This document shows positions 19,856 to 21,811 of a stretch of 53,810 nt of DNA, one piece after another. Numbering within the stretch: position 1 is the first letter of the stretch; each line of letters begins with the position of its first letter. This stretch comes from Octopus bimaculoides (Eukaryota), in contig NC_068993.1 in NCBI RefSeq assembly GCF_001194135.2, forward strand, positions 543,375 through 597,184, read 5' to 3'. The translations under genes and the position numbers were made by a program. The notes under the pieces were generated by a model. That model saw only the letters and a list, made by a program, of their open reading frames with translations, was not told where the DNA came from and searched no databases.

Positions 19856-20051
19856 AGATATTATTTGGTATGAGTTGCTCATCATAGCAATTAGCATGTT
19901 CAGAAGTACAATTATGGCTATCAAACTGTAACTGCCAAACATCAATTTCCCAATAAGCTCAGTGAAATGGTGAGGTTCTTTCAGATGGGCATCTTCCAGA
20001 TCAATAAGACCATAAATTGCCCAATATAAACTCTGCAAGATCTCAAAAAGA
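19856..20051 (-). CDS. TRPC: TRPC pore/S6 exon, copy C (intact): [65 protein letters not shown]
   Basis: Acceptor cttttgcag at 20052-20054, donor gtaaga at 19855, 196 nt, phase 2 in and phase 0 out. Confidence 0.93.
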
Positions 20052-20111
20052 CTGCAAAAGAAGCAGAATATAAGTTATGATCAATAAGGAGAAAGTAAAA
20101 GACTTTCTTAC

Positions 20112-20306
20112 AGATATCATTTGATATGATAGTGACATCATAGCAATTAGCATATTGAGCAATACTATAATTGCTATCATACTCTAGCTTCCAAACATCA
20201 GTTTGCCAATCAGCTCAGTCAGTTTGTGTGGTTCATCCAAGTGAGCGTTGTCCAATTCTATAAGGCCGTAAAAAGCCCAATTAAACTCTGCAAGATTTCA
20301 AAAAGA
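20112..20306 (-). pseudogene. TRPC: TRPC pore/S6 exon, copy B: disrupted pseudo-exon or poison exon
   Basis: Paralogous to A and C, with intact acceptor ttctttccag and donor gtaaga. 195 nt because of a 1-nt deletion near 20281 (tttaattgg vs tttatattgg). TAG at 20186-20184 where A and C have TAC. Confidence 0.88.
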
Positions 20307-21615
20307 CTGGAAAGAAAAGAAAAAGTTACAGAAATCTTCAGTATTTCTAAGATTATTCAATCTGATTTATTTCTGTGATTTCAGTGTTAAATATTTGCTC
20401 TTAGCAGTCTGAAAATTGAAAAAGGTTTTGGTCAATATAAACAAAATTATTTTATATTTAGGTTTCCATAGAATATGATGGATATTACTTGGGAAAATTT
20501 CCAGTAAATAATTAAATTCTTTGTTTTCTATGAATATTATAAGATTTTGTTGTGATACCTATTTAGACTCAAATATCACCAGAAAATAAATAATTAATTA
20601 GTTGATGCTAGTTACCAACCAGAGTGTTGTACTTAGCAACATCAGGGTGCCATATGGTACTATAGGATATCTTCAGAAAAATCTGTGATGACTTTATATA
20701 ATCCACCATCACAGCTAATATTATATCCAATATTAATTTATTATCTTCATATATTAAATCTAGACAGTCATAATTATCTTATGTATTGAATATATTTAAT
20801 CATAATTAAACTTCTATACTTCTGTTTTATGTTACTTTCAAACTGGTGACTATAATAGTATTTATAACATTTTTTATCAAGTGTGAATCAAAGACTTTCA
20901 TTCATTCCTTGCTTTACTGAATGTATATGTTTTTTTTTTAACTTGATAGATCTGTCCTACTGAATAAACTCTAACAACAATTTTTTCTCTAACTATTTTA
21001 TAATTAATTCTTTAAAAAATTAAAGTATAAATATTTCATAAAATTATGTCAGTAATTAATTAGCTATTTTTATATTCTAATTGTAATTAAAGTCAAAGAG
21101 ACAAAATCAAGAAATTAAGTTTGTTGGTGCCAAATTATTTTGGTCTGAAATGGTGCAGAGGTTGTATAAAAGCAGGTGTTTTTTTAGGAATTTGCCAAAT
21201 GGTCAGGTTTGGAAATCGGTATAAAATTGAAAAATGGTTAAAGTGCCTTGGTAAATCTTGAAAGAAATTGCAACAAATGACTGGATTTAGTTAGTGCTGG
21301 CATTTTGGACAGTTCTGGAAATGATGGAGTTGAAAAGGTTCAGCCTGGTAAAGAATTTTTCCTTTATTTTTTTATTTTCTGAAATATCTATACTGAAAGA
21401 GAAAAAATATACTTGATATTTTGCCTGTTTAAAAGAAATTGTTAAAGCAACAGCAGTTATAAAAGTTCACACACTTCTGAAAATTATCACAAAAAAGCCT
21501 CAGAAAAATTCATTAAAATTGTAAAATTGTAAAATTGTAATGATAAACATGAAAATGTGATGAAAGAATGATGTGTAAAGAATGAAAATGTTGTAGACAA
21601 AGGAATGAGTCTTAC

Positions 21616-21811
21616 ATAGATGAGTTGGTAGGAATTGCTCATCATAGCGATAAGTAAGTTAAGCAGAATAATAATGGCTATCATACTGTAACTGCCAAAC
21701 ATCAGCTTGCCAATCAGTTCGGTCAGTTTGTGCGGTTCATCCAAATGTGCGTGTTCTAGATCGACAAGGCCATAAACTGCCCAATATAAACTCTGCAAAA
21801 TCTCAAAAAGA
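21616..21811 (-). CDS. TRPC: TRPC pore/S6 exon, copy A (intact): [65 protein letters not shown]
   Basis: Acceptor ttctttccag at 21812-21814, donor gtaaga at 21615, 196 nt, same phases as copy C. Confidence 0.93.

Follow-up and report, generated by a model that had tools for sequence, protein, structure and literature searches.

Gene structure and the three pore exons

The window analyzed in this study is a 53,810-nucleotide (nt) stretch of Octopus bimaculoides contig NC_068993.1, and its central feature is a gene on the reverse strand that, judged by domain content and homology, encodes a mollusc-type TRPC cation channel. Between the exon encoding the fifth transmembrane segment (S5 exon) and the exon encoding the TRP box, one intron contains three paralogous copies, A, B and C, of the exon that specifies the pore helix, the selectivity filter, the outer loop and the sixth transmembrane segment (S6). 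The features of this region, in order of transcription, are the following.

27223..27572, reverse strand: constitutive S5 exon, encoding the S4-S5 linker, S5 and the S5-pore turret (from translation, splice sites and tblastn with TRPC homologues)
21616..21811, reverse strand: pore/S6 exon A, 196 nt, intact; pore helix, YGLVD filter, outer loop and S6, ending in ...SYQLIY
20112..20306, reverse strand: pore/S6 exon B, 195 nt, disabled here
20052..20111, reverse strand: B-C intron, 60 nt
19856..20051, reverse strand: pore/S6 exon C, 196 nt, intact; pore helix, YGLID filter, outer loop and S6, ending in ...SYQIIS
9010..9204, reverse strand: constitutive TRP-box exon, encoding the TRP helix/TRP box, phase 0 start

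Each of the exons A and C consists of one nucleotide completing an AAT codon and 65 codons, entered in phase 2 and left in phase 0. The S5 exon starts in phase 0 and leaves two nucleotides of a codon at 27223 (..GCA AA, followed by the donor gtaagt). The splice sites of A, B and C are alike, with a poly-pyrimidine tract and CAG at the acceptor and GTAAGA at the donor. Exons A and B are separated by an intron of 1309 nt, and A and C lie about 1.5 kb apart. The products of A and C are identical at 54/65 residues and diverge at the other 11. This arrangement had been proposed in a first-pass annotation of the locus, and the coordinates, sequences and splice sites of the three paralogous exons, the S5 exon end with its two leftover nucleotides and the phase 0 start of the TRP-box exon at 9204 were all verified directly; the lengths and divergence of A and C agree with that annotation, and their peptides are exactly as quoted there.

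It had further been stated that the pore exon alone is multiplied. Indeed, when the nine located exons were compared with the window by tblastn, only the pore exon matched more than once, and no fourth copy of it was found in the window. In an alignment of the copies with 100-nt flanks, similarity ends about 15 nt into the acceptor side and 7 nt beyond the donor, and the copies themselves, pairwise only 77-80% identical, are embedded in unrelated intron sequence. No assembly gap falls within 19.8-21.9 kb. Runs of N occur at 1176-1428, 2064-2073, 3803-4000, 9633-10042, 25326-25357, 37174-37183, 45371-45380 and 51149-51158; two of them interrupt the introns flanking the cassette, and therefore the lengths of the S5-A and C-TRP introns are minimum estimates.

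Exon B carries two lesions, a 1-nt deletion that converts TTTATATTGG to TTTAATTGG and a TAC to TAG stop, and a third change, N to L, in the conserved SNSYQ motif (SLSYQ). Its splice sites are still consensus, and its inclusion creates a premature stop.

The assignment to the TRPC family follows from Pfam domains in the concatenated exons (TRP_2, PF08344, E=2e-27; Ion_trans, E=1.8e-27; Ank_2, E=1.5e-8) and from matches of the S5-pore-TRP segment to solved structures, the best being Drosophila TRPgamma (9vqq, E=3e-78), followed by TRPC4 and TRPC5. N-terminal ankyrin repeats, TRP_2 and a six-transmembrane Ion_trans domain make up the TRPC feature set, and all are present in the gene; the TRP box EWKFAR stands right after S6, in the exon starting at 9204. 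In the alignment with TRPC structures, the pore-helix motif L(F/Y)W, the filter motif G-L-x-D/N and the gate motif LIAMMxNSYQ all have counterparts in the product. In the pore helix the sequence is LYW, not LFW, a subfamily trait also seen in the oyster protein XP_019924928.1 and flatworm TRPCs. This Crassostrea gigas protein, named 'TRP-gamma protein-like', is the nearest named protein found (60% identity over 473 residues), which supports assignment to a mollusc; flatworm, nematode and vertebrate TRPCs are about 50% identical to the gene product. The remaining parts of the gene are listed below; exon ends are approximate except for the S5 exon, the pore copies A, B and C and the TRP-box exon.

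6931..35497, reverse strand: TRPC gene, extent as located (tblastn clusters, open reading frame list, Pfam)
35497-35165, reverse strand: N-terminal ankyrin exon with the start ATG
about 34755-34270, reverse strand: TRP_2 exon
33029-32793, 29902-29774 and 28557-28417, reverse strand: further TRPC exons
7161-6931, reverse strand: C-terminal exon

Apart from the gene, the window is rich in TA/CA microsatellites and has a transposon-derived open reading frame (ORF) at 49250-49603 on the forward strand (MPIHTDREIKANRPDIVV...ALLGTAHILRKTLSIQ). A second copy of the C-terminal end of this ORF, at 9577-10209 on the reverse strand, abuts the N gap in the long intron that separates exon C from the TRP-box exon. 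Invertebrate-like contigs of ENA contain this family in great abundance, and there are distant named matches in a coral and a shrimp. Neither Rfam families nor tRNA genes were detected by scanning.

Constraint on the copies and their counterparts in close relatives

Divergence between the paralogous exons was estimated pairwise by the Nei-Gojobori method. The ratio of nonsynonymous (dN) to synonymous (dS) divergence is 0.064 for A-C (dS 1.44, dN 0.092), 0.043 for A-B and 0.079 for B-C, these ratios being rough because dS is near saturation and only 65 codons are available. Neutral evolution of a single copy was also simulated (20,000 trials, 0.72 substitutions per site): the open frame survived in 2.6% of trials and at most 33 of 65 residues were kept in any trial, compared with the 54 observed. 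By these sequence comparisons the copies are old, and all three, B included, appear to have been constrained for most of their history.

Two contigs from close relatives were found in a large representative search with exon C: L013, a 261-kb ENA contig, and L014, a Logan contig of a congener. L013 contains the S5 exon, then exon A, and further on exon C with what is left of a decayed B immediately before it; the splice sites of the S5 exon, A and C are conserved. Between the window and L013, exon A is identical at 65/65 residues with 24 synonymous and no nonsynonymous differences (dN=0, dS=1.23), exon C has a dN/dS of 0.036, and the constitutive S5 exon, at 94% amino-acid identity, has a dN/dS of 0.049. 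Therefore the alternative exons are at least as constrained as their constitutive neighbor. The first-pass annotation had named neutral evolution of orthologous copies beforehand as an outcome that would contradict it; the values obtained, 0 for A and 0.036 for C, are those of purifying selection. Exon A is also identical at 65/65 residues in three contig-derived ORFs (P0366-P0368), the intron flanks of which have diverged.

Contig L014 covers exons B and C, exon A lying outside it. Compared with the window, exon C has one synonymous difference in 195 nt and an identical amino acid sequence, and the B-C intron is identical at 57/58 positions (58 nt in L014). Identity is 95% over the 164 nt preceding B and 87% in the intron that follows C. 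In L014 exon B is intact, with no deletion and with TAC in place of TAG; it has three differences in 196 nt from the window copy, two of which are the disabling lesions. The broken state of B in the window is therefore peculiar to this assembly or species. On this comparative evidence B appears as the labile member of the cluster, intact in the congener, freshly broken (or mis-sequenced) here and decayed in L013.

The B-C unit (window 19856-20473 versus L014 175-790) is far better conserved than the adjacent intron, synonymous sites included. Excess conservation of this kind is usual around regulated alternative exons, and its presence here suggests constraint at the RNA level, that is, on splicing regulation. 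The same congener region yields an ORF (P0363, L014 287-808) that seemed to be a variant with three E-to-G changes. This candidate was rejected: the contig had been read with TGA as Trp (translation table 4), and the ORF reads through three TGA codons, fusing wrong-frame B to C, which is a gene-calling artifact.

Residue differences and predicted splicing of exons A and C

Aligned to mouse TRPC4 with HMMER, the exon covers residues T563-A628 of that channel (TRPC5 numbering is higher by 4). The 11 positions that distinguish A from C are as follows.

I575, pore helix: V in A, I in C
I579, beside filter G577 and the N580-equivalent D: V in A, I in C
V583, loop after the filter: H in A, D in C
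K587 (equivalent to TRPC5 K591), loop after the filter: D in A, K in C
E591 (TRPC5 E595), loop after the filter: K in A, H in C
F592, loop after the filter: L in A, F in C
V606, S6: M in A, L in C
V611, S6: I in A, V in C
M615, S6: L in A, M in C
L626, just below lower-gate Q625, at the S6-to-TRP-helix junction: L in A, I in C
A628, just below lower-gate Q625, at the S6-to-TRP-helix junction: Y in A, S in C

Nine of these differences are kept between orthologues (V/I, V/I, H/D, L/F, M/L, I/V, L/M, L/I and Y/S). In L013 both A and C read D..PHK at the outer mouth, so the D/K and K/H differences are species-specific. Thus, of the outer-mouth differences pointed out in the first-pass annotation, H/D and L/F are conserved between orthologues and D/K and K/H are not, which weakens, in this detail, its inference of channels with different permeation, pH or cation sensitivity. 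The contrast it drew at the gate-proximal end, LIY versus IIS, stands, both in the peptides and in the retention of L/I and Y/S between orthologues. At the S6/TRP-helix junction, single-copy relatives in the alignment likewise alternate between Y and S.

In TRPC5, residues E543, E595 and E598 form an outer cation- and proton-sensing site (PMC6488704). The variable loop of A, B and C aligns to TRPC5 585-599; the outer-pore site of TRPC4/TRPC5 comprises TRPC5 E543, E595, E598, R593 and H594. The equivalents of H594 and E598 are conserved in all window copies; the E595 position is K in A, H in C and glutamate in neither, and this difference between A and C is not kept in L013. It is plausible that the A and C isoforms differ in gating and/or permeation.

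In-silico splicing yields an open frame only for S5+A+TRP and S5+C+TRP; a skipped cassette, any two joined copies and a transcript with B each run into a premature stop. The exon length is 1 modulo 3, and therefore double inclusion stops early and skipping shifts the frame; two copies joined in the window meet an immediate stop (TCT TTT TGA at the junction). Taking the anatomy, constraint, orthologues and frame together, we consider it likely that A, B and C are a cluster of mutually exclusive exons produced by tandem duplication of a single pore helix/filter/outer loop/S6 exon, and that both A and C are used in mRNA.

Each mature mRNA would then contain a single copy: in this genome A or C, in the congener L014 any of the three (provided that A is present there). 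The resulting subunits would be identical except for the 65-residue pore/gate module. The first enforcement of exclusivity would be the reading frame itself, with double-inclusion, skipped and B-containing transcripts presumably directed to nonsense-mediated decay. For the adjacent downstream pair, a second enforcement could come from the spacer (28-60 nt), too short to hold a donor and a branch point together. Steric hindrance by a too-short intron is a classical mechanism of exclusivity, and the spacers between the two pore exons of the more distant relatives L008 (31 nt) and L010 (28 nt) are too short for removal as introns. With spacers of 60 nt in the window and 158 nt in L001, and with 1309 nt between A and B, the choice between A and C is not accounted for by steric hindrance; it would presumably be made by cell-type-specific trans-acting splicing factors.

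One further element deserves mention. At 22704-22716 on the reverse strand, 893 nt upstream of exon A, AATCTCAAAAAAA is antisense to the 5' end TCTTTTTGAGAT common to all copies, and it is possibly a docking-type element. The match is single against 0.38 expected by chance, which is not significant, and L013 does not share it.

Several observations weigh against this explanation. The 60-nt B-C intron of the window is borderline and may be spliceable, and for the choice between A and C no mechanism of exclusivity beyond frame and nonsense-mediated decay was found. Docking/selector RNA pairing is unsupported, the inverted repeats being AT-rich and at chance level, and no conserved intronic islands were found between the window and L013. 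Most of the residue differences between A and C are conservative, and those at the TRPC5 K591 and E595 equivalents, which involve charge, are not retained in L013. The dN/dS ratios are subject to the roughness noted above. Finally, a spliced S5-A-TRP or S5-C-TRP sequence had no close homologue among the protein hits and no junction in the metagenome contigs; since spliced sequences were not found in the collections searched, the usage of both exons is an evolutionary inference. Thus the mutually exclusive cassette of the first-pass annotation is borne out in its anatomy, constraint, orthologues and frame, and not by a spliced junction of A or C in those collections.

The lack of RNA junctions in these collections would fit another situation, in which only one copy (for instance C, which is nearest to the TRPC consensus ...SYQxIS) is ever spliced and the others are relics that have not yet decayed; B, broken here and largely decayed in L013, shows that decay is possible in the cluster. 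An unused copy would, however, be expected to resemble B in L013, whereas A and C, at dS of about 1.4, are still identical at 54/65 residues with intact frames and splice sites, far from the maximum of 33/65 residues and the 2.6% of open frames in the neutral simulation. Together with the complete identity of A to its L013 counterpart across 24 synonymous changes and the dN/dS of 0.036 for C, this makes it very unlikely that only one copy is spliced. Exon B could instead serve as a 'poison' exon, inclusion of which would lead to nonsense-mediated decay and tune channel abundance, A and C remaining the coding alternatives. It keeps a consensus acceptor and donor, its inclusion yields an early stop, and its block has three differences in 196 nt from L014 against a divergence of about 13% in nearby intron. 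In L014, however, B is an ordinary open exon, two of the three differences are the lesions themselves, a pattern that suits a very recent loss or a sequencing error no less than a new function, and B has decayed outright in L013. We regard such a role as unlikely.

That the triplication itself is an assembly artifact, arising from collapsed or expanded haplotypes or from a mis-joined paralogous gene, might be suspected from the gapped scaffold, with runs of N in both long introns flanking the cassette. The stretch 19.8-21.9 kb is, however, gap-free, the copies at 77-80% identity lie in unrelated intron sequence, far beyond allelic divergence, and the order and spacing recur independently (B-C in L014; A, B remnant and C in L013; three copies in the oyster-like genome L001 described below). 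The same exon order in the independent assemblies L013 and L014 argues against an assembly or haplotig artifact, which we consider extremely unlikely. Mutually exclusive splicing of A and C thus remains our preferred explanation of the locus.

Distant relatives and known systems

Among more distant relatives, multiple copies of the pore exon were found in several TRPC loci, as summarized below.

L001 (oyster-like): three intact copies of 199, 196 and 199 nt, separated by introns of 1466 and 158 nt
L008 / L009: two intact copies, 31-nt spacer
L010: two intact copies, 28-nt spacer
L003, L004 and L012: one copy each, the S5-to-TRP exon interval being fully covered
L011: one copy, the TRP exon not being within the flank
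59 other TRPC loci from metagenomes: one pore exon each (background set)

L001 was called oyster-like because its S5 exon is, by eye, about 90% identical to that of C. gigas XP_019924928.1. Its layout is that of the window: a copy, about 1.5 kb (1309 nt in the window), a second copy, a short spacer (158 versus 60 nt) and a third copy. As this three-exon layout is common to the window and an oyster-like genome, the cluster may predate the split of the mollusc classes. In a neighbor-joining tree, copy 1 of L008 groups with copy 1 of L010 (74% bootstrap) and copy 2 with copy 2 (82%). Synonymous sites between these two species are saturated, and this orthologous pairing despite saturation indicates that at least one duplication predates their split and that both products have been kept since.

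In the same tree the window copies A, B and C cluster together (80% bootstrap). On the basis of this grouping we considered an independent triplication in the lineage of the window; alternatively, given the layout of L001 and the orthologous pairs of L008 and L010, an ancestral cluster could have been subject to concerted evolution. With 65 codons and saturated synonymous sites, the tree cannot separate an ancestral, homogenized triplet from an independent one.

Independent two-copy versions, with spacers of 30-45 nt, are also present in further lineages of TRPC, among them an insect-TRP-like gene, and perhaps in genes that resemble NompC. Tandem duplication of the pore exon may thus recur across TRP subfamilies, as far as can be read from these exon layouts. 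We also tentatively suggest, with somewhat less than even confidence, that a pore/gate swap by mutually exclusive splicing is an old, recurrent and unrecognized feature of invertebrate TRPC-type channels.

Two tandem copies of a TRP pore/S6 exon are also present within individual ORFs of other contigs (P0361, P0362, P0364, P0369, P0372, P0432 and P0436). They include an insect-TRP-like sequence (of the FWASFGLVDL type), two 'LYFAAF'-type TRPCs and one divergent TRPC, and the four with two complete copies have an in-frame spacer of about 11-28 codons. P0436, annotated as TRP-gamma in the moth Eumeta, is NompC-like by motif and contains S6 twice. A candidate pore cassette in the ant Temnothorax curvispinosus, TRP-like X1/X2 (P0020 and P0055), was rejected: X2 differs merely in being without 23 S6 residues. 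The missing stretch includes the lower gate; X2 arises from use of an alternative donor and probably does not make a channel.

The first-pass annotation knew of no earlier account of such a cassette in TRPC channels, and in our literature searches, likewise, no paper describing duplication of a pore/S6 exon came up, either for a TRPC or for another member of the TRP superfamily. The TRP splice cases returned by these searches lie outside the pore, pore-loop variation in TRPM3 being the noted exception. Such isoforms may already be present, unremarked, in genome annotations. Mollusc TRP repertoires have been counted as one representative sequence per locus (PMC13402157), the cephalopod TRP survey included, and counting in this way hides pore-isoform diversity.

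Should the isoforms differ in selectivity, gating or modulation, and should cell types deploy them differently, several physiologically distinct channels would come from one gene, and mixed tetramers would add variety. Few kinds of splice event have consequences at the protein level that are reliably real, and the use of mutually exclusive homologous exons is one of them. The cassette would amount to a natural domain-swap experiment on the pore helix, filter flank, outer loop, S6 and S6/TRP-helix junction, in which evolution has kept particular residue pairs distinct: H/D and L/F in the outer loop, three positions in S6 and the terminal Y/S.

Mutually exclusive exons that give functionally different channels are also known elsewhere in the TRP superfamily, and one of the cases, TRPL, belongs to the TRPC family. 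Drosophila TrpA1 has mutually exclusive exons 1 and 10 (PMC11471635), and insect TRPL, Pyrexia and TRPM have N-terminal alternative exons (PMC6137742, PMC7143563). In TRPL, Pyrexia, TRPM and TrpA1 exon 1 the alternatives are N-terminal. Exon 10 of TrpA1 is located in a cytoplasmic linker. None of these exons encodes the pore or S6, unlike the TRPC cassette described here. In TRPM3, splicing within the pore loop alters channel properties (PMC9290681). There an alternative splice site changes the length of the pore loop; homologous exons are not swapped and S6 is not exchanged, in contrast to the TRPC cassette. The TRPM3 pore-loop variants differ in cation selectivity too.

Close parallels are found in voltage-gated calcium and sodium channels, where mutually exclusive exons set pharmacology and disease phenotypes; exons 8/8a of CACNA1C encode the segment IS6. 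Tandem-duplicated mutually exclusive exons in general are a known class, enriched in ion channels and recurrent in origin (PMC9741552, PMC5740500, PMC12772994), and TRP channels are not mentioned in the survey text of PMC9741552. Like the TRPC exons, those of the calcium and sodium channels (CACNA1C 8/8a, SCN 5a/5b) are tandem duplicates of equal length and phase, one per transcript; they likewise encode a transmembrane or pore-lining segment and are ancient, constrained and independently recurrent across lineages. The systems differ in what is exchanged. The calcium and sodium channels are four-domain proteins in which one segment of one domain is swapped, whereas the TRPC swap would span the whole pore helix, filter, outer loop and S6, in a module present four times per tetramer.

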